Counted from the stretch's first letter, positions 2,480 through 61,926 are shown. The stretch: 64,000 nucleotides of DNA from Haliotis cracherodii (GCF_022045235.1 NW_027266286.1:46376001-46440000), one strand, 5' to 3'. Notes: generated by a model from the sequence alone, not told the origin. Numbers and translations are program-made.

Positions 2480-4764
2480 TTTCAATACACTGATATTTGA
2501 AAACAGAAAATGCAAGAACTGTACTACGCCGGGGGGCAGGATGCACACACCGAGTCTCTGTTGAACAGTTGTTGTAGAGGGAGACCAGCTCAGCGTTGTT
2601 GAACATGTGATGTCCACGTTCTGTCACATTGTCCGGGTTCACTGTGCAACTAGAGAGACCTAAACCACACTCTGTATTTTCAGTGTAGTAGGCGTCAGAA
2701 ATGGCGATCTTCTGGGTGCTCCTGCAGCTAATGTCATGTTGAGTACAGCGAATTGTGGGGTGAAGGGTTCCATAGCATGCTCTACTGGTTCGTGTTGTGT
2801 CTACACAAAATACTTGTCATAACAAACATGCATTAAAAACGGGAACGGTGTACCATAGCAATCCTTACTGACATGTGTTGTGCCTACAATATAAACACGT
2901 CACAACATATTTAATGTTTGAACATTTAACGTACGTATTTAATTAGTTTGAATGTAGAATGTATTATTATAACAACGCATTGGTTTCGATAATATACAAT
3001 CAGACATTTCATAATTGTTTAAGTAACTTTTGGGAAAATGTAAGGGTCGGGCATGGTATGTGGATACCAGATTTAAGTACGTATGCATTATTGACACAAC
3101 TGTAACCGAACTTGGTTGTTGATAGTATTAGCATATTGTCGGGCAAGATGTCACACAATAAAGAAGGCTACACCTCGTTTCCCTCATCCATGTGAGGAAA
3201 AGGAAGGGGGTGGAGCAAGTCAACATTTCCAGGGAACGAGGATGAGTGAGTATCACTACAGAACAAGGTGATGTCTTTAAGCCTCAACTGGCCGAACAGC
3301 AATGAATACAAATTTACACATATTAGTAAGTTAAAGCACTCTTTTCTGTATGATAAGTGATAATTTTAAACGTTAGTTCTTGATCGTTACTGTTAATGTA
3401 TAGCAGGATATATGCTATATTTGAAGAGTATTGCATGTTCTAAAATTAACACACAGTTAACTTTGGACTTCATGAACAACAAGGTAGCGGTCATCAAGTT
3501 CATCATACTCGATGGTTCATATTCACACGAACAACAACGTCCATCTAGAATAGATAAAGGAAATAAACTGTTGAGATGATTACCAGATTATATTCTTTAT
3601 CCGGGTTCGTTATATCCGAAGTTGACTTCACACCTATAAATATAATGAATACAATTTCTTCTAATCTGAATTATAAATTAGATCTACTGTGTACCTTAGC
3701 AAACACGGGTTTGAAGAATGAACATTACCTGAAGCATCATGATCAATCAAAATGAACACGATCCAACATGATAGCTACAGATAACACCACTGGAAACTGA
3801 AATTATTGTTCCATGTGCTTGTTTCCCCTAGAATACATACACTGTATCATTCGTCACCACTCGCCTCTTTCCGTAACCTGCAAGGAGACTCGTCCCCCTA
3901 TCGATGAATGCTATGTGCGAAAATACGACAAACCAATCAGAATGCGCGTATGATGTCAAGTTCTTCGTCAAAGAATCCCTCTGAAAATTATTTTTGATTT
4001 TGCATATGTCTTGCATCTATACCCAAGACAAAGTAAAATGTGTTCAATCATACTGTATAATTCCGCACGTCCCGGTGTGCTTTAAATTGCATCTGATATA
4101 TATATATAATATATGGGGAAATATATGTGAACCATTACGCAACGATTTGACAATTGTTTTAGGTATGCCCGTTTGCGCTTAGACAGAACCCGGTCGCAAA
4201 AATGGCCATGAGCGGGGCGAGAATCGCTATTCGGCTTGTCCCGGAATAACACGAGTTGGTCACGAATGGCACTGTATGCAGCTGGCCAACTAAAGTGGAC
4301 GTATTTGAACAGACATCTGGGCACTGTGATTTTGATGTGACAGACATTACATTTTTATCTGGTTGTATTGACTGTCCTTTCCTTATTATGATACTGGATA
4401 CTGCATAACTTCAGACAATGGAAACCGATAATTAGTACGCTATGAGGAGAGAACTTTCTCTTGACATCGGCAATGCAAAGTTACCTGTAAACGTATTGAT
4501 TTGAAACTTGAAATAAACCCTCCCGCGACATGTGTCTTTACACGTATAGAGCATGTCTGAGACAAAAATGCGTAAACAGCTTATCATAAATCAACATATC
4601 CTTTGGTTTCCATCATTATGTATACATCGAATCACTGTACTTTATGTCAGGTGCTCATCTAATATCACCATCTTCATTTTGATGTATATCTTACCTGTAG
4701 AAACTGGCTGAAGAATGTAGTAAATAAAGGTGACACATTGCCAAACGAATACAAATTTCGCCAT
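2480..4764 (-). CDS. G1: SUEL-like/CUB-like membrane receptor paralog, 5' part only (remaining exons probably left of the window)
   Basis: Signal exon 4764-4695 (MAKFVFVWQCVTFIYYILQPVSTG|gtaag). SUEL-like exon 2800-2480 (321 nt, phase 1-1, open): DTTRTSRACYGTLHPTIRCTQHDISCRSTQKIAISDAYYTENTECGLGLSSCTVNPDNV...LYNNCSTETRCVHPAPRRSTVLAFSVFKYQCIE|gtaagt. Both are homologous to exons of G2-G4. Confidence 0.8.
2843..2883 (-). pseudogene. 5' remnant of an older SUEL-like exon (G1)
   Basis: ttgtag|GTTHVSKDCYGTPF just upstream of the intact exon; the adjoining intron matches the intron of the paralogs. Confidence 0.7.
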
Positions 4765-6049
4765 AATGTTGACAGCTCAAATCTCTATGATCAGCTCATC
4801 TGTAAATATACAAAATGTGTGCGGGGTGCATTATCACAAATAACTTACTTCCTTGTTAAATGACGTCTGCCCATAAGACCTGGATGGTTACAGTAATTTG
4901 CCTAAGAAGACACCACACGTTACATATATCTCAGTGTGGATATCATCGAAGCTTTAGAAACCATAAACAGTCAAGTTTGCCGAACACTGTCACATTTCAA
5001 CCTACATGTATCAATGCGACCATTTGCTTTATTTGACCTGATTTCTGACCTGTGTTCTGTACATAGGATCACATTCTACCACAAAGACGTAGAAACTGAA
5101 TTACTAGTCTAAAGCACATGTGACGACGGCTATACAATTGCAAGGTTATCAACAAGGAAATAAAACTGGGGCGTTAGGTTTAGGTCAGCTTGAACTCCTT
5201 GTGTAACTCACCTGACTGATCAGTCCGTTCAACTGCACACAACCGACCTAGGTGTGATGCTTTCTTACTACATGTGTACACAACCACATTATGTGTTGGT
5301 AATTGTCACTACTGTACTAATTACTACTTGAGTAACACGGCTGTCACATAAGTCAGTTATTCAGCTTAAACCTATTAGATATCGAGACGACACCCGTATA
5401 CATAATTCAACCCTAAGATACAGGTATCACTGACATAATTGACATGTATAGTTCGGGTCTGATGGTCTTACAAGGGACATCACAAACATGCCCTTCAAAT
5501 ACATCTGCTATACATACATGTATGATCACAGGCACTATGAATAAACACAAAGAGTTATGGATGTCAACTAAGTCTTCTTTGTTGCGGATAGACACACAAC
5601 GTTCAGGAGCGTGTTCGTATATATATAATTACTCCTTTAGTAGTGAAATTGACATCACAGGCAGTTCGGTGTCATATGTATACCTATCAGTTAGGGCTGT
5701 TGCCGCGGCGACCTCGTGTAGAGTTGCGTGCCTTATGGGTATCGGAATAGTTAACTGTGCTCGTATGTTCCGAGTTCATGATTCGCCCTGATTATGTTTC
5801 TATTTGACAGCACCAGACCTGTGCTTGTGGTATCACCAAAGTGGTAAACGTCTCATACACGAATCCCTCCGGGCTTTACTCCTTAATCCAGCTAGCGTGA
5901 TATATCTGAAATAATGTTTACAGCGGCGTTTAACCATGCACGCTCTCTAATGCAACTTGCGGCTGAAACAGCTGATTATCATCCTGACAAGGTAATATGC
6001 TAAACTAAACAAATATTGAACCTTGAGCAACATATGGTCCTTTGTGAAG

Positions 6050-9000
6050 CTTCACTATAAACAGTAGAAACAACAAACGCAATATTTGTGTGGAATAGAA
6101 TATGGGCGCAGTTTATTACAACATTTGTGACGAAACCCTGTGGGGGAGAGGTTTAAGACTAATACTAAAATAATAACTGAGCGCCGATATATCAGACGTG
6201 AGCAGCTCAGAGCATAAACAGGAGAGACTTTTCTCACTGGGGTCGCCTCAGATGAGTAACCCCCCCTGAGTTCGAGTCGACAAGCCGCCGACTCCACTCT
6301 GGTAAATATGCACAACCCGGCCAGCCGCCGGTAACCACCACTTCTGGCCAGCCGCCAGTAACAACACCTACGGTCAGCCGCCGGTAAAGCCACACCCAGC
6401 CAGCCGCTGGCTACCACCAACCTACCTTATTGAAGAATGTTATCTGTGAGGAACATCACATCAACAAATCCATTCTCCAATTCAGATCATAACAATAGTC
6501 CCGCCCACAGGGTCCCGCCACCGATCGCCACCACAAATGTAAGTCAAGTAGAACTGTTTAAACATATACTCTCCCGTACGTCCTATACTTCCTGTAAGAA
6601 AATAGCTATCCCCACATCGGAACGGGTGAATGTCATCATTGTGATATAAGTTGGAATCGCTTGCTGTTATATCATGCTTAATTCGACGTCCCCCGTTTTG
6701 CATATTAGATCCGTAACGAAACAGTTTACTCTCTTCCTCTTCCGTTTCAATAGCAGCCCCGTTTTGTGCGCCACGCCACACCCTTCTAGGTAGGATTTCC
6801 GACCACACCAGAAGTGTTTCAGGCATAGGCTCTGTGATACAAGAAACCAACCCTTCTATTTTCTTACTTAAGTCTACACCACTATCCTTAACATTGAAGA
6901 AAACTGGTATCTTGTAACTGGAAGACCATCAATATGTATGAAAAAACTCTCTTGGGATGATTAATGGGGTCTGATATCCAAATACAATCTCAGCAATGCC
7001 ACCGGGCAAATTGAAACATCAGCATGGGCTCCAATGTGCAGTTGAGCTGCTCTCAAATCGGTTTTGGATACTGATACGCTGGGTCTCTGTTACTCACTTG
7101 TTCACCTACACGCAAGAATCCAAAGAATGCCAAGGAGAACATACTCTGAAACAGAATAGTCTCGTACACCGACTTTGAAACAGATCGCAAGACTTCCGTT
7201 AACTGTTTTAACAATGGTAAGGTGATAGGAGCTCTTGTATCCGGCTTCTGAGCATCTCTTCTTATTCCTTGTAACAACTTCTTGATGAAACAATTCTCTG
7301 TAGGGTATGATGATGAGGCTAATTTATGATATCTACTAATATCTGAGATATGTTGATAAGCTGTTGCTGGAGACTTACCCTCCAATGATAGGTTGGCTAT
7401 GTAATGAGCAGTCTGCGAAACTGGAACCGGCCAGGTCTGATCTAGGTTATTGCTGAAACGAAACTGTTTAAATCCATGCAACGCATACCTGCACGCCTTA
7501 TTGGTGTTTTGAGATACTGACATACTTAATAGCCTGTTAGCTTCGTCTTCCATATCTGCCATAGAGAATCTGGTATTGGGGTTGGCTGCGGACAAGCCTG
7601 GGGTGCTATAATCCGAAACTGCTGCAACTGAAATTGGGATAAAGAATCTGCTATGCTGTTGTAGCACCCTGGAATATATTGAGATTTCATGATTATGTTA
7701 AGCTTCAAGCATTTGAGAGTAAACGAACGGACTAAAACCATTACTCTCGGTGATTCAGTATAAGCACTACTGCCTGGTTATCAGAATTATATATAGCTTT
7801 CTTGTTTGTAAGATGTTCCCCCCAAATATGAACTGCCACAAATATTGGGAAAAATTCCATGAATGTGATGTCTGAGGTGTAACCTTGGAGTCTCCATTCC
7901 TTGGGCCATAATCCAGCTGCCCACCTGCCTTTGAAGTACAAACCAAATCCACAATGCTCTCCACCCGCACCATCTGTAAATAACTGTAGAGAGTCACTTG
8001 ACATCCAATATTGGTCTGGGAACACTGTTTGCCATTGTGACAGCTTAAAAATTCCAGCCATGTATTAATGTCTTCCTTCATCTAGTCAGCCTGATATGAT
8101 GATATGCTCTCTTTTTATTTCTTGTTGAATCTATAAATCTTCTTGAAAATTGGCGTCCCATGGGGACTGCTCGGCAGATAAAGTTCAACAAACCTATAAG
8201 TGACTGCATTTCCCTCAATTTTACTTTATTACGATCTGCAAACCCATGAAGTAAGTTGTTACATTGATTGATTTTGTCTGTCGGTATTCTCAATTCGATT
8301 GTTACTGTATCAATTTCAATTCTCACTAGCAATAGGAACTCCCAACTACTGACATAGCAACAAAAAGGTGTCAAGAGCGTCTTGGCAACGATTAGGGTTA
8401 GGTGAGCTACCAAAAAGAAAGTCATCCAAATAGTGAAGTAATGTCCCTTGTTTCAACCTGCATTGAGTAACCCAGTGTATAAAACTTGCTACTTTTTCAA
8501 AAACTGCACAGCTCCATGGGGAGCACATATCTACATGATAGTTATCCTGAAAAAATATACCTAAGAGATCAAAATCTTGCTTATTGATTGGACATAATCG
8601 AAATCCACTTTTAATGTCTGCTTTTGCTAACATTGCCCCTTTGCCAAATTGGTGGACTAAGTACACTGCTTCGTCAAAACTTGTGTAAGAAACTGAGGCA
8701 TACTCATCATCAATATAATCATTGACTGATATACCCACTGGGTATGACAAATGGTGAATTAACCTATATTGCCCTGGTTCTTTCTTTGGGACAAGCCCAA
8801 TTGGCAACACCCTTAATTTTGGAAGTGGTGGGAAACTAAATGGCCCTGCCATCCTACCTGATGTAATTTCTTTCTGTAATTTCTGCCTGACTACTTCTTG
8901 TAGTTCTGTACATGATTTCAAGTTATGGGAATAACATGATTCCCTTGGACCTGTATAATTCAAACTAAAACCAAACCCCCTTGTGCATCGAGGCCCATGA

Positions 9001-9700
9001 GTCCTACTGGTTTGTTGTCATAGGTCTCCTGTCTGAGCCCTTTAGTTAAGATCCCTAATTCCACATACTCATTTTTCCAAATATTCTCCTTGATATTTTG
9101 AGGTATATTGGAACCTAAGTTATCTAAGTTATCGATAGGCTGAGGAGCAATAAACTGTGAGAAATCATGCACACCAAGCCCCTGTGACTGACTAATGCTG
9201 GTTTCCATAGCAAACGTACCGCTGTCGCTGCTATCAAGCTCAATAGGCCTATCGCCTACTGGTTGGAATCTAACTGTAGCTGTACTACTATCGGTATTAC
9301 TAGACCTACCACTTGATATATTTATGCAGCTCATCAACTAAGGGGGATAACTCACCTGTAGTTGAGACGAAACTGGCGGGCGCAGTCATTGTCTGCTTGG
9401 CCAATGTCGCTACCTCGCTGTCCGCTCGCTGAACAAGTTTCCTCTTTCTGCCAGCCCCTCTAGACTTAACAAACGCCAAACGCCCTGCCTGTCTACCCTA
9501 AACATCTTGAGACATCCTTTTTCCGTGGCATAGCAAGCTGGAAAGCTGTTAATCTTGATACAATACTTATTGTGCAGATCGAGCAAAAATTGTTGTTGCT
9601 GTCTATAGCGCAACATGAGCGGAAAGGATTAACACGTGACAACTGCACGTGAATCAGACAGATCTAGAGTAACCTCCCTTTCCCTATAACATGAAACCGG
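6050..9700 (-). mobile_element. Degenerate Ngaro-type (DIRS order) tyrosine-recombinase retrotransposon
   Basis: gag-like 8960-9337; RT 8346-8963 (YRLIHHLSYP, KADIKSGFR, HYLDDFL); RT/RNase H 8078-8425 and 7741-8061 (LFTDG, FMEFFPI, SDNQAVV); YR 7053-7560 (AFFGFLRVGE, then ICPVALLRLYLDIRP); SGNH-hydrolase-like 6482-6850 (VWSEILPR...DDIH). Frameshifts and internal deletions. Ends approximate. Confidence 0.88.
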
Positions 9701-11301: not shown

Positions 11302-11400
11302 CCACAGGCAGTGACCCGAACAGATGTGTTCTCACAGATGTTTGATACAGTACAAAGACAATTATGCTGTTATTATACGATACAAAGACCATTATGCTTT

Positions 11401-11546
11401 GGGGCGGTGGGATAGCCTAATAGATAAAGTATTCTCTCGTCACGCCAAAGGCCGGGTTCGATTCCCAACATGTGTACAATGTGTGATGTCCTTCTCCGTG
11501 ATATTGCTGGAACATTGCTAAAAGCGGCGTAAAACCATACTCACAC
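11401..11546 (+). mobile_element. SINE family A copy
   Basis: Same head and tail as 61117-61281. Confidence 0.75.
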
Positions 11547-12262
11547 ATTATGACATCATGCCATCACATAGGGACCCACGAAGAGCGGAGAGATACTCTG
11601 TGGCAAAATGCGTATTGATTTGTGTGTAAAATGAAACATAAGGAAATAGTTATTGCCTCTACACCATTCAAACCCAAGCTTACCAAAAATATAGAATAAA
11701 TTATGTTCAATTATGAAATGTCAATATCGGTAAAATACGCATGCATCTTTCATACTCTAAATATATGTTCAACAACATGTTGTCAAAAGACATTCCGTAG
11801 AATAAATATATGAAGGATAGTTCTGTTAAAGAACAAATGTTGTTGTTTTTTCTGGTAAGGATGTTCTGACACCAGCTAGCGATAGAGGTTGAATGATTGT
11901 ATGAGCGCATCATAGGTGTCGCCATTGATCACACCTGTTGGGAGTTCAGAAAGTGAGTTGAGATAAACTTCGACGGCTGTAAACCTCACATGTATACATT
12001 AGGATCCTTTACATATATGTGTATATAGCTAGGTAGGGTGTACATCAGTTTGGTTACTATATATTCGGTCTCGAAACTACCGATGCCTGTGGGTGGATAC
12101 AAGCAGAGTATATACATGTACAAGTATATGTGTTTCGTTAAGCAGTGCTTTGAGCTTGTATTCATGAAAAATTTCTGATACAAGCGAAATCTTAAAAAAG
12201 AATTGTGCAATGTCAGTCCTCTCTCCTCTCTCGCCCTCAATCTATTTTTTTCTCTCTCTCCC

Positions 12263-12551
12263 GGGGGCACGGGTGGCCCAGTCGTCTAAGGCGCCGCGAT
12301 TCGCTGTGCAGAGTTGTGTCCCTTTGGCACGCCAGAAATCTATGATTGTGGGTTCGAATCCCGGTTCGCCCCGATTATGTTTCTAGGTTTGTCAGCACCA
12401 TACCCGTGCTGGTGGTTTCACCGAAGAGGTAAACGTCTGAGACCTGCATGACTTCGGGCTTTCCTCCCACATCAAGCTGACACGCCGTGATATAACTGGA
12501 ATACTATTAAAAGCAGCGTTAAACCCAACTCACTCACTCACTCACTCACTC
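12263..12551 (+). mobile_element. tRNA-derived SINE family B (relics at ~5690-5935, ~10228-10400 and ~16340-16520)
   Basis: gggtggcccagtcgtctaaggcg A box, ggttcgaatccc B box, (ACTC)n tail; near-identical reverse copy at 33719-33990. Confidence 0.85.
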
Positions 12552-12678: not shown

Positions 12679-12869
12679 NNNNNNNNNNNNNNNNNNNNNN
12701 NNNNNNNNNNNNNNNNNNNNNNNNNNNNNNNNNNNNNNNNNNNNNNNNNNNNNNNNNNNNNNNNNNNNNNNNNNNNNNNNNNNNNNNNNNNNNNNNNNNN
12801 NNNNNNNNNNNNNNNNNNNNNNNNNNNNNNNNNNNNNNNNNNNNNNNNNNNNNNNNNNNNNNNNNNNNN
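12679..12869. other. Assembly gap
   Basis: Run of N. Confidence 1.
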
Positions 12870-39713: not shown

Positions 39714-39782
39714 TGAGGCGGTGAGGTGAAATGGGGTTTAACGTCGCGTCCAAGATCATTGCACCTATATAGCGACATGCAT

Positions 39783-39830
<48 letters not shown>

Positions 39831-49537: not shown

Positions 49538-49575
<38 letters not shown>

Positions 49576-52500
49576 GATCTTGGGAAATCAACGAAGGTTA
49601 AGGATATTGGGGGTTCCGCTGTTACGTTGAGTCTTTTAAACGATTGGATAACTGATGAACAATTATTCATTGTGATCTCATTATGAGGTAGGACAGATAA
49701 CTTTGAGAAGCACTACCCTGGAGTTGGCTACCCGACCGCCCCAATAATTAAAACTACTGCTGATGGTGCAGTGTCACTCTACAGTCAAAAACAACCTTTT
49801 GGTCAGTAGAGATACACCTTGATCTTTGATGTAATTGTATCAGGACTGGTTAAGGTACGACAAAGGAATTCTTATTCTACTATTGAACTAACTTTTATAA
49901 ATTTGTGTAAATACAAAAAACGGTTTGTGTGCAACCCCCACTAAACATACTTATTGAAATTATATATCGATACATGTTTTTATTTGTGAAAAAGGCACAA
50001 AGATATTCTCACTTCTCATTCTTACCATTAATCAGAAGCCAAATTAAGGTTGACGATGATCCCAGGAAATCCAAGTTTAGATATATTGGGAGTTCCGCTG
50101 TGACGTTGAGTCTCTTAAACGGTCGGAACCCAGGTGAACAATTGTTAATTATGATCTCATTCTCAGGTAGGACAGATAACTTTGAGAAACATTGCCCTTG
50201 AGTTCCTCGTCCCAGCCTCGCGTCAAGAGCATACACTGATATGCTTGTAGCAGTGACATCAGACTTGAAGCTGCACATATAATTGATGGTTTGAGTTGTA
50301 GGAGTAGGTGTTCCTTGTTCTCTGTGGATGAGTGAGACTTGAGATACTCTCTCTACAACACCTCCACTGATGTTCAGCAATTCACCTTCTGCAACATTCA
50401 TAGTTTCAGTCATAAGAAACATTAAGATTAACATGAGTGTCTCGAAGGTACCATATCCTATTCATTTTCGTTATCAAGCCAGGATAGCGTTCATTTAGAA
50501 CAATTCATGATTGCTTGGTAATACAGTGTGCTTTCCACATTTCTAATATGACTAGTATGATTTTAGGCACACCGTGTTCTCTTCCACGTCATTCTATGGC
50601 TCCTACACTATACTATTTTATTGCTTGAAGGGACTTACAGGAATCGAAGAGTGAACAGCGAAGAGCGACTCTTATGTTTAACGTGTGTCGTAGAACTAGG
50701 ACCACTCGCAGTACGAGGCGGAAATTCAATCTAGAGGAAAACCTGCATGTACCCGCACAAGAAAACAGATCACATACATGGATACGATGACATTGGCAAA
50801 TTTTAATGATGGGGAAGTACATCGCCATGTAGTAAACAATAATGGCATCCATTTCAGTTGCATGCAGATTTATGTTTATCGCAATGTTCTGTGTTTTGAT
50901 ACGCTCCACCACGAATCTCATAGGTAGGCTCCTCGGCCGAACTGGCATTTCCTTAAATAACAGTGCTTACAGATTTCAGCTGAGATTCTGTAGTACGCTT
51001 ACAGTTACGCACATCCATGACTCTATTAGCTATTGATCAACCAACTGCCTGGTAAAGACGTCAAGCAAGAAACGTTATCAATACAGTATCCAGTATAGAA
51101 AGCTCTTATCCTACACATTCTTCATAAGGTTGTCACAAACGTCTGTCACCCCAAAGTTTTTTCGATAAACTACGGACGGCTGCGAACAAAACGCATCTGG
51201 TACAGCTAGCATTGCTTTTCAAACAATTTCAATCACATCTGTAGGCATTGCCCGGATATTCGTCAGCAACAATGTCTACATTGAGCCCTCCACTATTTGT
51301 TTTAGTAATTTGCTCACTATACATTAGACACCTTCCTCCTTGACCGATCTGACATAGTGAGGTTGGTCACTGCGCAGTTTCCTATGTTCCTGTCCACCAT
51401 GTAATGCAAAGCTACTACCAGCAATATACACCATCGTGCCCAGCAGCTTCCCAAGGTTGTCGCTTCCCAAACAACCATTTCGACCATAGAACGTCTTACT
51501 CCTCCATTTCGTCTTCAATATCATGACATTATCCAAAGTATTCCGTACCTGTGAATCCAGTTGTAACTGGCTTCACATGACGAAACTGTACAGAGTACGT
51601 GAAGATATAATCTGAACCGTCAGCGCATTCTGGGTCGTGTCTTCGAATTCCGTCAAACCATGACGTATTTCTGCTAATCTGTGCCTGTTACACTCCTTGA
51701 AACTCTTCACCGCCAATACTACTGGTAATTACCCTTTATCCTATAATGGGTAGGTTTCTCGGCAAGATAAAAGAATAAAAATGATATCCGTTGGGGTCAT
51801 CTGCGGATAGAGATGCAAATATCAAAGATCAAATAGGGACTACTTTCAGTGTTTATTAACAAACATGGCGCAGCCCTTGTCATTCGGCGATCGAGTCAGA
51901 ATTAACCATCGGGAATCTGAATGAACTACAGAGATAACTGCTATCATTATCAAAGGAACAGCCTTATATCCTGAAAATCAGTGTCTAACTGTGAACAGCT
52001 ATGACAACTTTGCAGATATAAATTTCGAAACAATTTTGCGAGGGCACTAGGCCAAGCCATATCAGAAGCCATATCTGTGCTTGTAGACCTCTGCGGCTTG
52101 AAAACTTTTCCACAAATTAATAAAGTTGGATTTGACCGAAATATGTTACCTTGTTTCGTTGTGTCGCTGTGTGTCCATCTGACTGCACTTTTTAACGTTA
52201 TGACAGAACAGGCCGACTGTCAACAACGTCTGAACGTGGTCGTGACGTCTCATACACTAGGGTTAGAGTAGCTTCTCTTTGACAAAGGGCAGTAACTCAA
52301 GCGGACAGACCGATGGATTGCCGCGAAAGACAAGTAAGAAAAAAATGTTGTTTTGCGAATATGTTGCTTCGCTACTGTATTAGAAACAGATTTCTGTTGA
52401 AACTAAATTGGCTACTGTCACTGTCCGACTGACACATCACTTACCCTGTGACGTAATAAATATAAATGCGCGCATTCCAGGAAAACTCACAATGTTTCGG

Positions 52501-54934
52501 TAATATTTGTGCGAGAGGGAAGGCGATTTTCAAGCACAGTATTAAAGAATTACATTATATGATAAAGAGGTCGCCAAGGCTCGCTAAATACAATGTTTAT
52601 TCCTAATGCAGGATATTTAAATTTACCATCCCCAAACACACTCGCGTGATAACCTCCATATCCTTTACAAAATATACTCCACCCTAAGGCAGACGTTGGA
52701 GGACCCACCAAGGGACATCGCAGCCCGCCTGCACACACTTAACTGCCAGTTGTTAGTTATCGGGGAATGTTGTCTTCGTATATTTATCGAGATGTAACCA
52801 TTATAAAGTCTACCATGAGAATGGCAGTAGAGGTTTTGTCGTCTTGCGCGTTTTTTGTCAAATGGTGACTGAATTTACAACTGTCAAGGAAAAAATAACT
52901 TCGAAAATCGCCACATGACGCACATTTGCTACATTTAGTCTTTCTCTACACGATCGCGAGTTGATGCAGATTGTCGATGCACTGGTGTTTTACAACAGAG
53001 ACTACAATAAATGGATCTTGAGTTGAAACAAAATACCAGCAGCGAGTGAGATTTGATTAAACCCATAAGTTATTACTAAATTAATTATTGTCTAAACACA
53101 CTTACTCTTAACACACTGATACTTCACAACGGAAAATGCAAGAACTGCACTACGCCGGGCAGGAGCAGGATACACACACCGAGTCTCTGTTGAACAGTTG
53201 TTGTAGAGGGAGACCAGCTCGGTGTTGTTGAACCTGTGATGTCCATGTTCTGACACATTGAACGGGTTCACTGTGGCGCAACTAGCGAGACCTATTACTG
53301 CACACTCTGTATTGTCAGTGTAGTAGGCGTCATAGATGGCGATCTTCTGGGTGCTGCTGCAGCTGATGTCATGCCCAGTACAGGAGAAGCCAGGTGCACC
53401 ATAGCAGGCTTTACTGGTCCTTGTGGCACCTACATGGAGGACACGTCACAACATGCATGGGTGAACATTTACTGTGAGATGAAATTAGTTTGAATGTAGT
53501 ATTTATAGTTATAATATCTCTGTCTATATTGTCCACAATACAATGTTTTCGCGTATATACTAGTACTTAATCATTTGTCAGACATTCATATACATGTGTT
53601 AGTAAAGCATCTACATGGAGGACACGTCACAACAAGCATGTTTGAACATTTACTGTGAGATGAAATTTGTTCGAAAATAGTATTTAGGATTATAATATCG
53701 CTGTCTATATTGTCCACAATACAATGTTTTCGCGTATATGCTGAATTATTTGTCAGACATTCATATACATGTGTTAGTAAAGTTTGCGAAAGTGTTAGGG
53801 CCAGGGATACCATTTTAATATAATATAGATACATGTACATGTCCATTTGTAGATCGCTGATAGCACTGTTTATGATATAAAGGCTTGTTTTTTCGATGCG
53901 ATGAACCAATCCCATAAACTTGGTATCATGATCCGATCAATATGCCTAAGTCTCCTAACATTAAGAATCCCTAAAATACAAATTTACATGTATCGGAAAG
54001 TTAAACACTAGGTTTTCTTTGCAATCAGAGGTTATTTTAAACTTTAAATCTTGGCTGTTACTGTTACTTTTTAAGAGGAGTATATGTTATATTGAAGATT
54101 GTTCATGGTCGTCTGGATTTTTTCCAAGATACAATTGTTAGAATCTGTTCCTGCAGGATATATGCTCTATTGAAGAGATTTCATGGTCTTCTATCATATT
54201 TATTTTCATCAGCACACAATCAAATTTGAACTGCACGGTAGGGCTTATCCAGTTCGTAATACACGATGTTGGTTATTCATTGTAACAATAACCTCTATCC
54301 AGAGGATAAACATGGACTATACACCCGGAGTTGACTTCAATTACATACCTATCATTCTGATGAATACAATGTTTTCTATTCTGAACTATGCATCTACTGT
54401 GAATAATACAACATACACATGTTAAGAGAATGCACTACATATAACTCAACTCGAAACTGAAAATATTGTGTCTCCTAGAATAAATGCAATACGTGCACCA
54501 AACCGACTAAACTGGATTTATCTGAGCAGACATCAAGGCATTGTGACATTGGGTTCACCCGCCTCGTTTCACTGACTGTATGTTGTCCTTTCCTTGTTTT
54601 AACACTGCATACAACTTAAGTGAGTGTATAGCTTCACACAGCCGTCATTTAGTACGCTTTCAGCTGAAAACTATTTGATACTTTAAGTTAACATTGCCGC
54701 AGCATGGATTTATAATTATCCTCGTATATGGCTTAAACTGCATAATGATAAACTGCTTATCACAAATCAATATGTTCGTTGGTTTCCTGTCATTATGTAT
54801 ACATGACATGCTTTATTCCAGTTGCTCACCCAATATTTCCCATCCATATAAATGTATGTCTTACCTGTATAACCTGGCCGCAGTTTGTAGTCAGAAAAGA
54901 TTAAACATATCCAAACGATCACAGAGTTCGTCAT
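44688..54934 (-). CDS. G4: SUEL-like + CUB-like single-pass receptor with short ITAM-bearing tail (~399 aa)
   Basis: Exons 54934-54865 (MTNSVIVWICLIFSDYKLRPGYTG), 53429-53106 (SUEL-like), 50388-50026 (CUB-like), 49111-49067 (ASDPFNVTCQAVTGA), 46269-46207 and 45825-45763 (duplicated 63-nt S/T stalk exons), 45242-45161 (TM GLFVGGMAVGAVIVILVGLAVYVLVVR) and 44877-44688 (tail). All are GT-AG; total 1200 nt, open. Confidence 0.88.
45329..45537 (+). repeat. 3 x 68-bp tandem repeat in G4 intron
   Basis: gcagttagtcaaatag(t/c)c(a/c)tgcaatgtacatctgtatttcttaacgaataggtagaagcaaacgatca at 45329, 45397 and 45465. Confidence 0.95.
46316..46860. mobile_element. Non-autonomous element with ~67-bp terminal inverted repeats, followed by a hairpin at 46860-46960
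   Basis: catcttcccaaggcaag...ccttgccgaactag versus ctagttcggcaaggg...cttgcctcgggaagatg. Confidence 0.8.
47760..48600 (+). mobile_element. Tc1-like transposase relic
   Basis: RLHAAYLHAR, MPWPVISP (cf. WPA.SPDL), LQEE and SMPRR fragments in broken frames. Confidence 0.65.
49511..49725 (-). pseudogene. 3' remnant of an older CUB-like exon (G4), with stop and (AT)n expansion
   Basis: TPG*CFSKLSVLPHNEITMNNCSSVIQSFKRLNVTAEPPISLTFVDFPRSL-(TA)n-SALIWLLIN|gtaag. Confidence 0.85.
50026..50388 (-). CDS. G4 CUB-like exon (chimeric)
   Basis: 363 nt, tgcag/gtaaga; within ORF 50009-50434. Confidence 0.82.
50980..51700 (-). mobile_element. Crypton-like (DUF3504-type) relic in G4 intron
   Basis: GCLGSDNLGKLLGTMVYIAGSSFALHGGQEHRKLR matches the LG...LL.T..Y..G..FALRGG.EHR.L motif; decayed C-terminus near 51000-51060. 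Confidence 0.7.
53106..53429 (-). CDS. G4 SUEL-like exon (absent from the ORF track)
   Basis: GATRTSKACYGAPGFSCTGHDISCSSTQKIAIYDAYYTDNTECAVIGLASCATVNPFNVSEHGHHRFNNTELVSLYNNCSTETRCVYPAPARRSAVLAFSVVKYQCVK; 324 nt. Confidence 0.87.
53430..53782. repeat. ~180-bp tandem duplication of the intron end and acceptor preceding the G4 SUEL exon
   Basis: ctacatggaggacacgtcacaac...gtgttagtaaag at 53430 and 53611. Confidence 0.9.
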
Positions 54935-57847
54935 AACGTTGACAGCTCAACTGATTGTAAAGCTGGCTTGACGGCCGTATCACCGCGGAAGCTAATATTA
55001 ATAGAATAGTATTTTTTTCGGTTATTGTAGGCAGGCAGATTTAAATAATTCTATCAATTATAGGTTACAAAAGTTACTACAGTATGCAAAGAATGTGTGG
55101 CAATAACACGATATTAGTATCTTACTTCCAGTTTTAACACCGTCTGCATATTGAGGTCATGCACTCCAGGTAAAACACGACGTGAATGCAGCCACTACAC
55201 TGTCACGAGGGAGATAGTCCAGGGATAGTCTGCTCAATGAGAATATTCCGACCTGTCAACCCCACCCGTGACATGTCAAGGTGTGAGATTAAAGCACCTA
55301 AAATTACGAAATGCCCTGACCCTCACGTGAAGTTAAACATGCCACTGTGTTTATTTTTATAAACACGATATGACAGTAAATGATATGTATCTCAGTGACC
55401 TAAACGGAGAGGAGCCGCCGTGTAAAGTGTCTCGGGCCTTTGTTCTCCCAGTTACAATACAAACTTCCCTATGTAACTGATAGTTCGTATCTGGACAACG
55501 TATCTGGCCAGCCAGCACCTATTAGTGGGATAATATATGAAGATACATCATAACATTGTGCTACAGCTTCACGTTAACTAATACAGTGGAATGTATTAAG
55601 TCATCATCCACCGTTGTTTCCTTTTCATTGTCGTTACATTTTTTGTACATCTCGAACCAAGCTATCATGTATATTACAAAAATACGTTGAAGAGCATTGT
55701 AATCGGACGAGATGAAAAACATGTTGAAGTTGAAAGTTCAAGGCGTATGAATATTTATTTATTTTCCTGTCAAGTATTCAAATATTCAACATGGTCATGA
55801 GTGTAGTATTCATCAACACCAAACAGCATAAATTTGACGGGGGCTGTCAAGATCCTGAATCCTGTGTATTGAACACAATAAGGCTATTTCATTACGACAG
55901 TGATGTACATGTACATGTAACCCACGAGCAACCCCTCATCACATTGTTCTCTCGAGTAAATAGTATTTGAACGTGACTTATCTGTTCTTATCAAGCACAC
56001 ACGTTTGACGGTCACCCATTCACTTACTCTCTACAACCAACTTTTGTTTAACATTGCCTGATTTGTGACCTCTGTGTTGTACACAGGATCATGTTCCACT
56101 ACATGACCGTACAAACTGTTAGCTTGTATCAATCTAAAACACAATGTCATGCAATCGAAGACCTTACCTAAATTAAACTGCGTTCCGGTTGTCAACAAGG
56201 AAGTAAAAACTGGCGCGTTGGTTGAACGCTTCAAAGCATATTTTGTGTAACATTGTCACCTGACTTTCCATTCCGTTCGACTGCATACAACCACATTGTA
56301 TGTTGGTGATGATCTAATTTTGTAACACAGCGGTCACATGTTTCACAGAGCTAGGATATGACTGATACATTGACTCGAAATATGATGCAATTATAGAGGT
56401 AATACCGTGGTAATATCAAATTAACACACATTTACATACAGTGTAAGGCGGTTTTAACAGTAATATATCATTAACAGTGTTGACATGGATAGACCGTGTT
56501 TGATGGTCATCACTGGGTCATCACAAACGTGCCCTGCAAATATCTATAGTTCTTTTTGGTAATGGCCTAAATAAAAATAAACCTTTTACACCAAACATAT
56601 CATACCAATAATTAAATTCCTTCACCAGATAATAGTTAAATAATTAAGATAAAATTTCAAAGTTAAAATCAAATGGACTTTTATTCGTTGATCAAACAGG
56701 TTATATTTACAGAAGACATTTGATATGAAATTGAGAAAACGCACTAAAGGAAAGCAAGGAGTTTGTTATTATATGTAGTTTAGTAGGCACACTGGGACAT
56801 GATAAGAAATTAACTATTTCAACAATAAGTTCTTGTTATGGGAAATTATCATGACAATCGTCTTGCTACACTGAAGTGATCAGCTTGCCCATGGGAAGAC
56901 CCCACTCCAGTATTTGGATGCCACCAAAATGCTATTATAATTGCATTAGAATTATTGAGGACTATGTGCTATCTGGTTTAAATACCTATGTAACTATTGT
57001 AAATTATTCAATGCATGAGAGGTGACTGAAAAGTTCCGAGCCTAACTATGATCTACTGTAATGATGGAGTTAGCTGCTAATGCTTTTTTGTCTCCAAGGA
57101 CATGATGTACATGAAAGGCAATATCAATAGTTACAGAAACGGGTAAGAATTGATACTGTAAAATGTATTAGACTTTATCATCCAACATGAACAAAAATAG
57201 CCATAGTGGCGCAGAATAATGTTACAGAAACGGTATAATACTTGGTAGTAAAAGTGTGAATTGAAGTGATCACATTTACATAAAGAAGAAATACACTGTA
57301 ACGCTCGGTAAAAACGATTATCCACATTTGAATCAAACTTATATACACGTATTCATTATACTATGAACATTATCGTTGTGCTCAATTGGTATTTACGTTG
57401 ACCTTTTATAAGTCAAACAGTTTATAAACTGTATAAGTATTATCAAAGTGATACATCTGATAACGGTGGGTATCCAAAGACCGTTTAAATACATGGAAGG
57501 ATAATTACAGCTGAAGTTTCAGATTAATATGGAAGAACAACACATTTTAAATGTTTCTAATTTTGGCAAACCCTCCAGGGCCCGGAAATACTGCTGACAA
57601 AGTAATTGTTTTTAATTGATCAGGGCGAAACTGGGGCTCGAACACATTATCATAAATCGTGGCACTGCCAGTTGTGGCGCCTTGGACGACTAGGCTCCAC
57701 GAGTCCAAAACATTTACTAGTATTTCTGAGATACAAAAAACCGTGATGTGAATACAAAAAGTGTTTGGTACCGCAACTGAGGATATTGTCAAGTTCAAGG
57801 TAATCACGAAGCTATTCGTAACACAGCACACAAAAACATATTCCAGT

Positions 57848-58469
57848 TTAGGAATATGCTCCTTTCATTGGTCCTGCAACAGAATAATCAGAATTGTCTG
57901 CCCTTCCTGATGCAGTGTCATACTGTGAACTAACAGTTTTAGGATGATTGATCACACTAGGGAAATGGTCATAGTCGTCTTCATCAGTGTTCCTATTGGT
58001 CATACTCAGTTGTGCCACTTCCTTAGTTGCAGAGACAGCAGTGTCGTAGTCATTCTGGTGTTTCTGCGGGTTGGTTTTTGTGTTGAAAAGATTGTAACCA
58101 TAATCGTCTTCTCCATTAGTTCCTCCTGTATGTGCATGTTGATCCACCGAGGCTGTTGTGTCGTAGTCACTGGTCTGTGGGGATGGTTTGTCTCCGATGT
58201 GGTCATAGTCACTTTCAGTGGTAGAAGCTTTTGCAAACTGCTTTGAATTGTGCTTCCCAGCTGGTTCTATCATGAAATATGTGTCTGCATTTGGAGGAAC
58301 AGCCAAGCCATCCGCGGTAGCGTAATCATAATCACTGCTCTGTGTCTTCAGGTCCTGAATGTCATGGCAGTTGTTCGGTGGGATTTTACCGGCCAAACTG
58401 TGTGTCATGTCAGGCTGTGCATCCAGGGGAAATGATGCGATATTCTCCTTTCCTTCGCTTTTTGCTCGC
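57848..58469 (-). CDS. G5 long cytoplasmic exon (12 Tyr)
   Basis: ORF 57848-58525 trimmed to the ttccag acceptor: RAKSEGKENIASFP...SDYDY...TYFMI...ESDYDHI...SDYDTTAS...DYGYNLF...NDYDTAVS...DDYDHF...QYDTAS...SDYSVAGPMKGAYS*. Confidence 0.87.
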
Positions 58470-61400
58470 CTGGAAGTCACAGAGTTTAGATATACAAGGT
58501 GACATAACCAGTAATACAAGTACAAACAGTAGTATTATGAAGAACATATTTCAATACAATCTTAATTTCAATCATTAAAACAAATCTGTTTGGGTTATAC
58601 TCTCAGGATCTTTCAGCGACGTTCCCAGTTTGTGAATTCTAGTCTCGCTAAAGTTTACGGGATTCTATTGTCTCAAAAATACAATGTTTTACCTTTCTAA
58701 AGGTACATCTGCCTCACTTTAATGGGTTCAAACGTTTCCACGATATAGTGAGTAGTCAAAAGTAATAGCTGATGAGACCGTTCGCTTTGCGTATTGTATA
58801 TAATTGCAAGATTCTTGGTTCGAGATTATTTTCTGAAGAAGAAATGTGTGTATCTTTGTTTTTCCAAAACCTAACAAATATGTTTACAGAGTCACACACC
58901 ACATAACTTCTATAGCAGGATAGCTTTACTGTTAATGATCAGTGTATGTGACAGATATATGAAACTGAATACATAAACGATTACTTACCTATTTCGTATA
59001 AGCCTCACTGATACCAATGTTACAACCAATATTGCTAAGACTGTGGCCACAACTCCACCAATAATTGCACCAGTACCACCTGCGACCGAACAAATATATG
59101 TCGATTAATTATTATTATCATATATCATTTATCATTATATATGTTGGCCATACCTAACATTCACTTTGTGAATGGTTACATTATTGCTGGACGATTAACG
59201 TCCTTCACACAACTTATCTGTTACTGATGTGTATTTACCACTGGCACATAAAATACCCTTGTAAAGATCCTCGCTTTTCATAACAGGTGACTAACCAGAT
59301 AGGTGGTCATGCTTGATAACTTGTTTGATATTTCTTATTGTAACCCCATTTATAACTGGATTGTTTGGTCGAGATTCGATTATTAACAGACCACCAACAC
59401 AGCTAAACAGACATGAAATACATCGTCAATTGTGAATTTACCGTAACAGATATACATATTTCGATCATCATGATGACTTGAACATGTTTTATTTTTATTT
59501 TATCTCTTGCATCAGTTACTGTCATTAAAATGATCTGTTATCATTAGAATCAAGTTTGTACTAACTTCCTTTCCAATACAGAGTATAACTGAGTAGGTCA
59601 AACATAGTAATAGTTTTTAATTATATTTTTCTTACTTGCATCAGCTGCATTTAAACTTACTGTTGCTGTCTGTTGAAGGAATGGGCTATAGCAGGATATA
59701 GTGAAATGTAGTTAATGTTTTGTACTGATCCATACAAGATTGTATTCATCTGATCCATAAAAAATGTGACAAATTACATGTGGGTCAATACATCCTGCTG
59801 TACGTGTATCGTTGTCCGCAAGCACTGTATTATTAGTCGTTGCTATTCTACTGGATTGTGCAATAGGAAAAATATAAATCGCATAAGTAGTATACACAAA
59901 ACCCTATTCTAATGAACGTTATCGAAGTCATTCTGCACGGTGGATCCAGACATATTCTTTATTTATTTAGAAAATACGGAAACTCTTACATTGACAAATA
60001 AGAATACAACAAAAGCCCATATCACTAACTCTACCTTTTAACGGTCGTTTGATCATGAAGAAAAGTCAATAATGCATTCACAGCGAACTGTCCTGAACTA
60101 TTGTCCTAAAGGTCTGGTTTGTGTAATATAAACATTTGTATTTATACATGCATTATACCTGTTGTTGTTTGAGTGTAGTTCCTCGTCGTTGCTTTTGAAG
60201 TGATATCTATAGTCAGTGATGATCTACTTGATCCTCCATAATCAGAAAATATAATCGTTGATGATAATACACTTTCCATATTAACAAGTTTACATATACA
60301 TCATGATGGGGAGATATACTGATGTGTGGGCATTTGAAACGCAACTCTTACATTATCTATTTATATGACTATCTTTATTCTATTTGGATATAAATGCGGA
60401 TCTTACACGTACACGATGTATCGGCTTTCATGCGCAAGCTAGTATTAAAAACAAGCTCTTAGGATCAACGAAGCTAACAAGTATTATGTTTACATTTCGA
60501 TAAAGTTTCTGACAAAAAGACATGAGTGTTTTAGTGAGGCGTTTGTCCTTAAAGGTCGGATTGAAAAAATACTGTGTATCCGACTTTAGCGACACTGGCA
60601 AAAGTGTGTGTAGCAATATGATTTCAATGCGTAAGGCTTGAAGAAATCCATTTTTCTGATATTCAGAACTACAATTAACTACACAATGGACGCTACTAAT
60701 TGTCTCAATGCTAAAGAACTTGCATTACCTGTTGAAATATGGTTGTTACCATCTGTTTGGGAAATATGACTGATTGTTGTACCTGTTTGATCAGAAAACA
60801 CATTGGATATGTTGATACAAATATTAAACGTGGCTAGAGCACATTTCGGATGCGATTATACAACATGTTTTAAACATTATTCAGGGGAAATCTGGATATA
60901 ACATTGGCCTACCTGCACCTGTCACTGGTCGACACGTCAAGCTAAAAGGGTTTGATGCTGCAATATAAGACACACATAACATCATAATGTCAGCTAATCT
61001 TACTGTTTATCTGGAATTGTAAGTATAACCTATTTGTCATATGTGTATATATGTGTGTGTATTTATACAAGCAATGTAAATATACATCGTGAAATTATTA
61101 CTACACAATAATTAAATTGAGTGAGTTAGTTTGGTCTTACGACGCTTTTAGCAATATTCCAGCAATATCACGGCAGGGGACACCAGAAATGGGCTTCACA
61201 CATTGTACCCATGTCGGGAATAGAACCTGGGTATTCGGCGTGACGAGCGAACGCTTTAACCGCTAGGCTACCCGACCGCCCCAATAATTAAAACTACTAC
61301 TGATGGTGCAGTGTCACTCTACAGTCAAAAACAACATTTTGGTCAATAGAGATACACCTTGATCTTTGATGTAGTTGTATCAGGACTGGTTAACGTACGA

Positions 61401-61926
61401 CTATGGAATTTTTATTCTACTATTGAACTAACTTCTATAAATTTGTGTAAATACAAAAAAAAAACGGTTTGTGTGCAACCCCCACTAAACATACTAAACA
61501 TATATCGATACATGTTTTTATTTTTGAAAAAAGCACAAAGATATTTTCACTTCTTATTCTTACCATTAATCAGAAGCCAAATTAAGGTTGACGATGATCC
61601 CGGGAAATCCAAGTTTAGATATATTGGGAGTTCCGCTGTGACGTTGAGTCTCTTAAATGGTCGGAACCCAGGTGAACAATTGTTAATTATGATCTCATTC
61701 TCAGGTAGGACAGATAACTTTGAGAAGCATTGCCCTGGAGTTCCTCGTCCTGACCTCGCGTCAAGAGCATACACTGATATGCTTGTAGCAGTGACATCAG
61801 ACTTGAAGCTGCACATATAATTGATGGTTTGAGTTGTAGAAGTAGGCATCCTATTTGCTCTGTGGATGAGTGAGACTTGAGATAATCCCTCTGCAACTGA
61901 TCCACCGGTGTTTAGGAATTCACCTT
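57848..61926 (-). CDS. G5: receptor paralog with long multi-tyrosine tail, 3' part (signal and SUEL exons expected right of the window)
   Basis: Exons 61926-61564 (CUB-like), 60957-60913 (ASNPFSLTCRPVTGA), 60782-60729 (GTTISHISQTDGNNHIST), 60206-60159 (DITSKATTRNYTQTTT), possibly 59665-59636, 59079-58989 (TM GGTGAIIGGVVATVLAILVVTLVSVRLIRNR) and 58469-57848 (tail). Phases are compatible. Confidence 0.85.
59795..59857 (-). pseudogene. Dead stalk mini-exon in G5
   Basis: Homologous to G3 exon 32845-32916, but the acceptor is AC instead of AG and the GT donor is deleted. Confidence 0.65.
61117..61281 (-). mobile_element. tRNA-derived SINE family A with 11-bp TSD (other copies 11401-11546 +, 26720-26820 +; relics ~19330-19430 and ~20870-20990)
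   Basis: ggggcggtcgggtagcctagcggttaaagcgttcgctcgtcacgcc head (A/B boxes, GTC anticodon-like) and (ACTC)n tail; TSD caataattaaa at 61106-61116 and 61282-61292. Confidence 0.85.
61564..61926 (-). CDS. G5 CUB-like exon
   Basis: 363 nt; the 3' three-quarters are nearly identical to the G4 exon. Confidence 0.82.

Follow-up and report, generated by a model that had tools for sequence, protein, structure and literature searches.

A hallmark of innate immunity in vertebrates is the cluster of tyrosine-motif receptors in which ectodomains pass between tails of different wiring, and to our knowledge nearly all such clusters are built on Ig or C-type lectin domains. The question addressed here is whether a mollusc has built such a cluster from other parts. 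The locus in question is a 64,000-nucleotide stretch (the window) of the 1.18-Gb genome of the abalone Haliotis cracherodii, C23:46376001-46440000, where C23 denotes NW_027266286.1. An original prediction from the sequence had described it as a candidate array of paired immune receptors, with five genes (G5 to G1), one lectin-like ectodomain plan and two alternating signalling tails. The results presented below identify an abalone-specific family of 13 surface-receptor genes, as yet unnamed, and clarify how the genes of this family came to share their ectodomains.

Organization of the array

Self-comparison of the window and reading in six frames reveal five tandem paralogous units on the minus strand, running from G5 to G1 from right to left, which share one ectodomain plan and carry two unrelated transmembrane (TM) and tail modules, as had been claimed. 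The likeness of the units goes far beyond chance, because their blastn self-comparison gives E-values of 1e-96 to 0. Each unit of the window has its own signal-peptide exon, and positions 2480 and 61926, the limits of the region under study, are true exon ends. When the genome was searched with each exon singly and the matches were mapped, the full array was found to comprise 13 units over approximately 207 kb (C23:46.298-46.506 Mb). For the units outside the window, the sequence used came from 3.3-kb loci around the exons, and full-length comparisons were made with database proteins only.

With long-tail (L) and short-tail (S) units read 5' to 3' along the minus strand, the order of the tail classes is L S L L L S L S S L L S L, in which G5, G4, G3, G2 and G1 stand fifth to ninth (the U numbers used below follow this order). 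The run L, S, L, S from G5 to G2 is real but local; alternation is no rule, because the 13-unit order departs from it. The expectation that G1 would end in a long tail also proved wrong: its TM and tail exons are located 1.5-2.1 kb to the left of the window, at C23:46373874-46374458, and belong to the short class.

Exon ends were read from paralogue alignments for each exon class and from splice sites, and small exons were fixed by RefSeq proteins (Table 1). The plan consists of a signal-peptide exon (70 coding nt), a lectin-like exon (Lec, 315-324 nt), a CUB-like exon (363/366 nt), a short Cys-containing linker exon (45/51 nt), a stalk of one or two Ser/Thr-rich exons, a TM exon and a tail exon, with AG/GT splice sites at all aligned exons. 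The exon lengths given earlier, 363+45 nt in G4 and G5, 366+51 nt in G2, and a remnant with a 51-nt linker in G3, are all exact. The ectodomain exons have lengths that are multiples of three and are all in phase 1-1, so that they can be skipped, duplicated or swapped without a break of the frame, and the TM exons (82 nt in the short class, 91-94 nt in the long class) shift to phase 2. On paper G4 lacks nothing: its nine exons are all present, with canonical splice sites. The long TM and tail module of G3 (30682-31790) is 73-76% identical to that of G5 (57848-59079) over approximately 1.4 kb, and the short module of G2 (16939-17496) is 74% identical to that of G4 (44688-45242), in agreement with the groups G3/G5 and G2/G4 proposed before; the long and short modules are not homologous to each other.

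Exchange of ectodomain exons between tail classes

Trees were built for each exon together with its flanking intron; the introns were needed for the Lec region, because the tree of the Lec exon by itself did not resolve. In the CUB-region tree, U2, U3, U4, G5, G4 and U10 form a clade with 45-nt linkers, and G2, U11, U12 and the G3 remnant form a clade with 51-nt linkers. L and S genes occur together in both clades, and a tree with monophyletic S genes is rejected (approximately unbiased test, p-AU 5e-6). The long tails group as (G3,U11) against (G5,U10,U3,U4), and the short tails as (G2,U12) and (U2,G1), with G4 alone. In the Lec-region tree, U3 groups with G4, and U4 with G5; the CUB and tail trees instead unite U3 with U4, and G4 with G5. 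A Lec tree constrained to keep U3 and U4 together is rejected as well (p-AU 8e-43), and the synonymous divergence (dS) between these two units is 0.22 in the Lec exon and 0.04 in the CUB-like exon. In the Lec region, the neighbours G2 and G3 are not close relatives. The incongruence of exon trees that the original prediction had named as its test is thus present, and it implies that the array is a mosaic whose segments have been exchanged.

On the other hand, certain units are congruent in all regions, namely U7~U11, U8~U12, U2~U9 and U3~U4~U10, which reveals the block duplications U7,U8 -> U11,U12 and U2,U3 -> U9,U10. Duplication of such two-gene units as blocks, and not pairing as such, accounts for much of the way in which L and S genes neighbour each other.

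The exchange between tail types, which had been proposed, has left a scar in G4. The CUB-like exon of G4 and the 300 nt downstream of it follow G5 into the first 17 nt of a short interspersed element (SINE) in G5 (61266-61282). After this 17-nt scar, the G4 sequence switches to the middle of the exon in an older, orphaned CUB-exon copy (49500-49742). This old copy is free of the SINE, which only G5 carries. Because of the scar, the CUB-like exon of G4 must have been copied from a G5-type, long-tail-type gene. These results show that block duplication of units of one or two genes enlarged the array, and that long- and short-tail genes traded ectodomain exons, through either non-allelic gene conversion or unequal crossing-over.

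In several units, the intron that follows the Lec exon also contains a partial copy of that exon's 3' end, just downstream of the exon itself, at 52952-53056 in G4, at 35264-35368 in G3 and beside U11 (L047). They are further footprints of unequal recombination.

The two tails and transmembrane segments

The short tail reads RRYDLT-KKQGDTPASIEHPTYSGLSAGxxVNNYxIIEQ...DYQN[LIV] and contains a canonical ITAM (the tyrosine-based activation motif of immunoreceptors; YxxL-x8-YxxI) followed by a C-terminal YxN. The ITAM is YSGL-SAGAHVNN-YAII in G2 and YSGL-SAGGDVNN-YGII in G4. Most of the 15 tails shown, which come from four Haliotis species, retain both the ITAM and the YxN with hardly a change of letter; the first +3 position is L or M and the second I or M. 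The exceptions are P0056, in which Cys replaces the second Tyr, and P0004/P0054 and P0063, each of which lacks one tyrosine of the two. ITAM-Syk signalling does operate in molluscs, since the oyster receptor CgIgR recruits CgSyk (PMC6994640).

The long tail carries approximately 12 tyrosines in acidic contexts, arranged in three modules of the form DYxH[IF], about 10 residues, and YDT[TA]. In the H. asinina protein P0007 (716 aa), approximately ten near-identical tandem di-tyrosine modules can be seen by eye (..DEYNHLGQGVSPLSGTYDTTASAAKSMMGNNGSNPT..), so that the module behaves as an expandable unit. Only one site of the long tail resembles an ITIM (the tyrosine-based inhibition motif of immunoreceptors), SDYDHI in G5, U3, U4 and U10. 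Its -2 position is occupied by C in G3 and U11, by G in H. rubra and by D in H. rufescens, and N or D stands at -2 in the remaining YxxI/L sites. The long tail therefore has no conserved ITIM ([SIVL]xYxx[ILV]), given that -2 varies among S, C, G and D in paralogues and orthologues, and the claim that the two tails oppose each other is not supported. No immunoreceptor tyrosine-based switch motif (ITSM) was found in the tails.

Both TM segments start with a GxxxG-type motif. A charged TM residue is a mark of adaptor-coupled activating receptors. In the short class, the TM segment of G2 carries Asp (ILVDLAVY), and the corresponding residue is Gly in G4 and most orthologues, Cys in U2 and Asn in one H. 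rubra protein. The charge is thus not conserved, and the short form carries its own ITAM. As far as motifs can indicate, the evidence supports a putative activating role for the short form only.

The ratio of nonsynonymous to synonymous substitution (dN/dS), which had been suggested as a measure for each domain, is 0.44 in the short tail, 0.53 in the long tail, 0.60 in the Lec exon and 0.61 in the CUB-like exon. The tails are thus below the ectodomain, but the pairwise values give no clear sign of diversifying selection, except in two short CUB comparisons with very low dS.

Predicted folds of the ectodomains

An AlphaFold2 (AF2) model of the Lec exon was folded with 14 paralogues. Foldseek assigned 11 of its top 13 entries to Gal_lectin/SUEL (prob 0.92-1.0, TM-score 0.47-0.54), including the Lec domain of latrophilin (also in Lec-teneurin complexes), sea-urchin SUL-I and CSL3; the twelfth is the galactose-binding-lectin-like domain at the C-terminus of a rice beta-galactosidase (prob 0.60). 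In VIA, SUEL structures reach Z 5.8-7.0 with a root-mean-square deviation of about 3.1 over 82-84 of 107 residues, against Z <= 5.0 for most unrelated folds and 6.3 for one unrelated chain, 8cdd_A. As modelled, the first domain has a divergent SUEL-lectin fold and is no profile-level member of Gal_Lectin; the SUEL label of the original prediction is accordingly retained for the fold and dropped for the profile. The ligand of this domain may be a protein, by analogy with the latrophilin-teneurin pair.

For the model of the CUB-like exon, Foldseek retrieves generic jelly rolls. VIA ranks the CUB domains of CD109, A2M, C3 and C5 highest, at Z 7.3-8.5, which is near noise level. In the ESM Atlas, 20 of 30 neighbours belong to CUB clusters (at 0.91, with low recognition). 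Relatives in Lottia are named CUB domain-containing in UniProt, and hhalign of the CUB-like profile to two of them is non-significant, with a shared ALDxRL..C motif visible. The CUB label, which likewise fails at the profile level, therefore depends on weak leads, that is, on the ESM Atlas neighbours, the VIA matches and the Lottia names.

Transcripts, gene models and relatives

RefSeq proteins of H. cracherodii match the exons of the window at 100%: P0058 corresponds to G2, P0045 to G5 and P0051 to G3. Models also exist for U2, U3, U4, U10 and U11. The G2 model is a full short form with the CUB-like exon, and the G5 and G3 models are long forms without it. Four long-tail models, P0045, P0046, P0047 and P0048 (G5, U10, U3 and U4), leave out a CUB-like exon that is intact and flanked by canonical splice sites.

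Contigs of four public runs (X1, X2, X3 and X5), whose designation as RNA is a guess, were placed on 57700-63699. Those of X2, X3 and X5 are almost confined to the exons of G5, and X1 also contributes intronic pieces. The joints within the contigs have CT..AC ends, which correspond to GT..AG on the gene strand, and connect the tail with the TM exon (58468 / 58988-9), the TM exon with the stalk (59077-9 / 60727-9), the stalk with the linker (60786 / 60911) and the linker with the CUB-like exon (60957 / 61564). In X2 and X3, the joint 59077/9-60727/9 skips the 15-nt mini-exon of G5. Contigs also end exactly at 61564 and 61926, the limits of the G5 CUB-like exon. The same depth value in X2 suggests that the TM-stalk, stalk-linker and linker-CUB joints come from a single contig. 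Splicing, whose absence was to have refuted the array, is thus seen in transcript-like contigs, with joints from the CUB-like exon through linker, stalk and long-class TM to the long tail, next to the RefSeq models that match the window, and long-tail transcripts with the CUB-like exon exist. Since the contigs include this exon, the RefSeq model of G5 is at best one isoform, and the annotation probably misses CUB-plus isoforms. The current RefSeq models are incomplete in this exon of four long-tail genes and in G4 and G1.

A profile search of 1.84 billion representatives gave only 25 relatives at E <= 1e-3. The close relatives are all from Haliotis (rubra, rufescens, asinina and cracherodii) and are all called 'uncharacterized protein' in the four RefSeq sets. 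Distant relatives occur in Lottia, Patella and Gigantopelta, some of them named 'SUEL-type lectin domain-containing' or 'CUB domain-containing' in UniProt. Both tail classes are retained in H. rufescens, H. rubra and H. asinina. Literature searches on abalone ITAM/ITIM, rhamnose-binding lectins, mollusc paired receptors and the RefSeq gene numbers found no paper on the family, which agrees with the remark that it was not a named one.

Interpretation of the family

Based on the results presented above, we consider it somewhat better than an even chance that the array encodes a Haliotis-specific multigene family of type I surface receptors, most likely signalling via tyrosine phosphorylation. 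The lectin-fold tip of the ectodomain, with or without the second domain, would bind a glycan or protein ligand. Once phosphorylated, the short form would recruit a Syk-type tandem-SH2 kinase through its ITAM and Grb2-type adaptors through its YxN, and the long form could serve as a multi-site tyrosine docking scaffold, either activating or damping. With phase-1 cassette exons, ectodomain modules could be lost, doubled or exchanged, whether by the cell or in evolution.

A number of observations weigh against this interpretation, in which ligand, signalling and any immune role are inferred. The confidence of the AF2 models is modest for the Lec domain (pLDDT 65) and modest to low for the CUB-like domain (pLDDT 59), whose model is all-beta with 9 strands. 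No Pfam match to Gal_Lectin (PF02140) or CUB (PF00431) appears at E <= 1 with single exons and nine full-length relatives, and sequence profile searches of the PDB with either domain give 0 matches at E <= 10. By inspection, the Lec alignment shows ..DAYYT.., no DPC, and ..VKYQC at the sites of YGR, DPC and KYL, which we take to be the classical rhamnose-binding motifs of SUEL lectins; as these are not kept, sugar binding is doubtful. Several units look decayed, with a truncated CUB exon in G3, a shifted acceptor in U2 and an early stop in the tail of U12; G5 lacks two tail tyrosines, and the tail of U4 is truncated. The dN/dS of the tails is only mildly below that of the ectodomain. No RefSeq protein was found for G4 or G1, the apparently intact G4 included. 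Finally, the placed contigs are 90-99% alike to the window, so that some of them may stem from sister species or near paralogues.

That the array is an assembly artefact of collapsed or mis-joined haplotypes is extremely improbable. Two assembly gaps do fall within the span, and the stretch from CUB-like exon to tail is almost the same in U3 and U4, but these two units differ strongly in the Lec region, the units in general differ by 12-40% in DNA, far above allelic divergence, and consecutively numbered RefSeq models stand on one chromosome-length record in H. rufescens and H. asinina. Moreover, both gaps are located in non-coding DNA and are crossed by no reading frame. The gap at 12679-12869 is intergenic, between the stop codon of G2 (16939-16941, at the low end of the short-tail exon) and the first exon of G1 at 4764. 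The gap at 32152-32402 is located in the intron of G3 that separates the stalk exon (32845-32916) from the TM exon (31697-31790); the RefSeq model of G3 (P0051) splices over it in frame, and the closest paralogue of G3, U11 (P0036), has no extra exon at the matching position. No claim made here rests on letters inside the gaps or on continuity across them. The haplotype mis-join that the original prediction had itself raised was rejected on the unit divergence, the U3/U4 difference in the Lec exon and the non-coding position of the gaps.

A stronger contender, although we give it less than even chances, is a birth-and-death family without functional pairing, in which the L/S pattern is a by-product of block duplication and ectopic recombination and the proteins serve adhesion, gamete or larval recognition or another non-immune function. 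The two-gene block duplications recorded by the congruent pairs, the exon remnants scattered through introns, the degraded units and an ectodomain dN/dS of about 0.6 would all be expected of such a family, and the SUEL fold also serves protein-protein adhesion, the latrophilin Lec-teneurin complex being among the top fold matches. However, the ITAM tail is strongly conserved in four species, and the retention of both tail classes across Haliotis argues for maintained signalling functions of both. This alternative is mostly compatible with tyrosine-signalling receptors and differs mainly on whether L and S forms cooperate. Cooperation is at the core of a rather unlikely explanation, true paired immune receptors, with near-identical ectodomains that see the same pathogen or self ligand on haemocytes, opposing outputs and gene conversion under pathogen pressure. 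Each ectodomain lineage (45-nt or 51-nt linker type) does carry both tail classes, the transfer of an ectodomain from a long-tail-type to a short-tail gene is documented, the short tail has its canonical conserved ITAM, and G5 has one site of ITIM consensus, SDYDHI. There is also a precedent in CEACAM1/CEACAM3, whose activating partner has its own ITAM-like motif (PMC5112662). Against these stand the variable -2 residue (S, C, G, D) of the ITIM-like site, the lack of an ITSM, a TM charge confined to Asp in G2, the unpaired order of the 13 units, the distance between the neighbours G2 and G3 in the Lec region, and dN/dS values without clear diversifying selection.

It is unlikely that one transcription unit holds, or once held, both tails as alternative 3' cassettes, with a single 5' part (signal peptide and Lec, with or without CUB) spliced to the short TM and tail or to a long TM and tail farther downstream, and that separate genes then arose by duplication and cassette loss. 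In H. rubra, short and long isoforms share identical 5' exons (signal peptide and Lec) both at LOC124273454 (P0054/P0004 short, P0040/P0041 long) and at LOC124265724 (P0049 short, P0031 long); these models may, however, be read-through or merged predictions in a fragmented assembly. Behind the short tails of U2 and G1, orphan long-tail fragments are present at a distance of approximately 5.4 kb downstream, with no intervening Lec or CUB match; a dual-tail gene or a lost long-tail gene may have left these relics, which are frameshifted. The 1-1 phase of all ectodomain exons would suit alternative cassettes, but every unit of the window has a signal-peptide exon of its own. Returning to tyrosine-signalling receptors, their most ambitious form would be an abalone paired-receptor system independent of the Ig superfamily, with an ITAM-bearing short form, a multi-tyrosine long form, a lectin-fold ectodomain matched by conversion, and output rewired by cassette or tail choice; we regard this as improbable. 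Overall, the observation behind the original prediction is solid and its evolutionary inference largely right, and its functional label is premature.

Coordinates and further features of the locus

Table 1. Exons and exon relics of the array. Positions are those of the window unless preceded by C23.
Unit	Feature	Position	Strand	Basis or remark
G5	Signal-peptide and Lec exons	C23:46443280-46443351 and 46441861-46442166	-	Right of the window
G5	CUB-like exon, 363 nt, phase 1-1	61564-61926	-	Alignment of 10 paralogues, AG/GT ends, contig ends
G5	Linker exon, 45 nt, ..SNPFSLTCRPVTGAG	60913-60957	-	Alignment, contig joints
G5	Ser/Thr-rich stalk exon	60729-60782	-	100% match to P0045
G5	Mini-exon, 15 nt	60494-60508	-	Used in RefSeq model only
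G5	Long-class TM exon, GGTGAIIGGVVATVLAILVVTLVSVRLIRN	58989-59079	-	Joint to 58468 in three runs
G5	Long tail exon with stop codon	57848-58469	-	About 12 Tyr, mostly in D/E-Y-D contexts, three di-tyrosine modules
G4	Signal-peptide exon, MTNSVIVWICLIFSDYKLRPGYT	54865-54934	-	Paralogue comparison, splice sites
G4	SUEL-like Lec exon, 324 nt, 8 Cys	53106-53429	-	Alignment, predicted fold
G4	CUB-like exon, 363 nt, sister to G5 exon	50026-50388	-	Alignment, tree
G4	Old CUB-exon 3' half and 17-nt SINE scar	49500-49725 and 49726-49742	-	Copying footprint, G5-type donor
G4	Linker exon, 45 nt	49067-49111	-	Alignment
G4	Two stalk exons, 63 nt each	46207-46269 and 45763-45825	-	
G4	Short-class TM exon, VGLFVGGMAVGAVIVILVGLAVYVLVV	45161-45242	-	
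G4	Short tail exon with stop codon, RRYDLT..HPTYSGLSAGGDVNNYGII..DYQNV (ITAM and YxN)	44688-44877	-	
G3	Signal-peptide-like exon	37373-37442	-	Unused by RefSeq model P0051
G3	Lec exon, 315 nt	35447-35761	-	Alignment, RefSeq
G3	CUB-exon remnant, 3' half only	33513-33723	-	Ends at repeat copy 33717-33993
G3	Linker exon, 51 nt	33140-33190	-	Skipped by RefSeq model
G3	Stalk exon	32845-32916	-	Gap 32152-32402 in next intron
G3	Long-class TM exon and long tail exon	31697-31790 and 30682-31222	-	
G2	Signal-peptide exon	24070-24139	-	100% match to P0058
G2	Lec exon, 318 nt	21666-21983	-	Alignment, RefSeq
G2	Mini-exon, 24 nt (VARRDMS), GC donor instead of GT	20913-20936	-	Upstream of CUB-like exon; in RefSeq model
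G2	CUB-like exon, 366 nt	19913-20278	-	Alignment, RefSeq
G2	Linker exon, 51 nt	19671-19721	-	Alignment, RefSeq
G2	Stalk exon	17884-17946	-	
G2	Short-class TM exon, Asp in TM	17415-17496	-	
G2	Short tail exon, YSGLSAGAHVNNYAII..DYQNL	16939-17122	-	
G1	Signal-peptide exon	4695-4764	-	
G1	Lec exon, 321 nt	2480-2800	-	
U2	Orphan long-tail fragment (L020), frameshifted	C23:46481832-46482232		
G1	Orphan long-tail fragment (L021), frameshifted	C23:46368472-46368783		

The 24-nt mini-exon of G2 has its counterpart in the H. rufescens orthologue P0056, which carries the same insert; near the G2 mini-exon, a partial copy of the CUB-like exon is located (20359-20484). The Lec exon of G1 is followed by no CUB-like exon. 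The H. rubra protein P0031 has two Lec domains in tandem. An inverted relative of the repeat copy at which the G3 remnant ends is present at 12268-12543.

The SINE-like repeat is approximately 170 nt long and ends in GGCTACCCGACCGCCCC. Its copies are located at 61113-61282 and 19332-19427 and, inverted, at 11399-11547 and 26721-26812. Its summed depth reaches 5e5, and loose ends number in the hundreds in all four runs, so that it is evidently very abundant and transcribed in abalone. Between G1 and G2, the minus strand at 7053-9337 holds a broken retroelement in several shifted frames, probably DIRS-like, with a reverse-transcriptase-like open reading frame (weak RVT_1 match, E 0.015) and an RNase H-like one; a further open reading frame resembles the N-terminal region of a tyrosine recombinase by eye, with no Pfam match. 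A further reverse-transcriptase fragment is located at 25774-26064.

Elsewhere on the same chromosome, 25 Mb away, the family has a second small locus at C23:21384200-21405019 (21.38-21.41 Mb; L030, L031 and L044), which contains a short-tail gene without a CUB exon (P0002) and a second, inverted short-tail exon. The H. cracherodii RefSeq protein XP_071115466.1 (P0002) is identical to an exon of this locus. Weak Lec-like exons were also noted on the plus strand at C23:46545600 and C23:192043.

Comparison with known receptor systems

The SUEL or rhamnose-binding lectins, such as the latrophilin Lec domain, SUL-I and CSL3, are similar to the first abalone domain in predicted fold (Foldseek prob 1.0, TM-score about 0.5), in their length of about 105 aa and in their richness in Cys. 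Latrophilin, moreover, likewise places a lectin-fold domain at the N-terminus of a membrane receptor. The abalone domain differs from these lectins in its shifted Cys pattern, in having no Pfam match at the threshold used here and in the loss of the three sugar-site motifs. Among molluscs, the oyster CgIgR is also a type I receptor with an ITAM in its own tail (PMC6994640). It is, however, a single gene with five Ig domains and has been tested experimentally, whereas the abalone receptors are predicted, have a lectin fold and form an expanded array with two tail classes.

CDCP1 is a type I protein with CUB-like ectodomains, whose tail tyrosines are substrates of Src-family kinases and docking sites, and by this general description it resembles the long form. 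It differs in being a single gene, in having no lectin domain and in having no sister with an ITAM. The Hydractinia Alr and Biomphalaria GRC clusters are lineage-specific as well; recombination has shaped them, and their type I membrane proteins have tails with tyrosine motifs. Unlike the abalone family, they are built on Ig-like or novel domains, and their roles are backed by genetics.

Vertebrate paired receptors (CEACAM1/CEACAM3 closest, and also Siglec-5/14, KIR and Ly49) share with the abalone array clustered paralogues with similar ectodomains and different tails, and exchange of ectodomain sequence between partners by gene conversion. The abalone ectodomain is non-Ig (SUEL-like and beta-sandwich), and its long tail has no conserved ITIM or ITSM; it also has no conserved charged TM residue and no strict pairs. 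CEACAM3 and the abalone short form are alike in that the activating partner carries its own ITAM-type motif (PMC5112662). Should the proposed function be true, paired-receptor logic would be convergent, and the family would offer an entry point to ITAM/Syk signalling in gastropods as well as candidate disease-resistance genes in endangered and farmed abalones. Even without that function, the array is a tidy model of modular evolution by phase-1 exon cassettes. It provides a clean, datable gastropod case, in which exon incongruence and a SINE scar are combined with a SUEL-like/beta-sandwich scaffold and an ITAM conserved in four species, and by its sequence features it resembles a cluster of paired or tyrosine-motif receptors, most of all CEACAM1/3.

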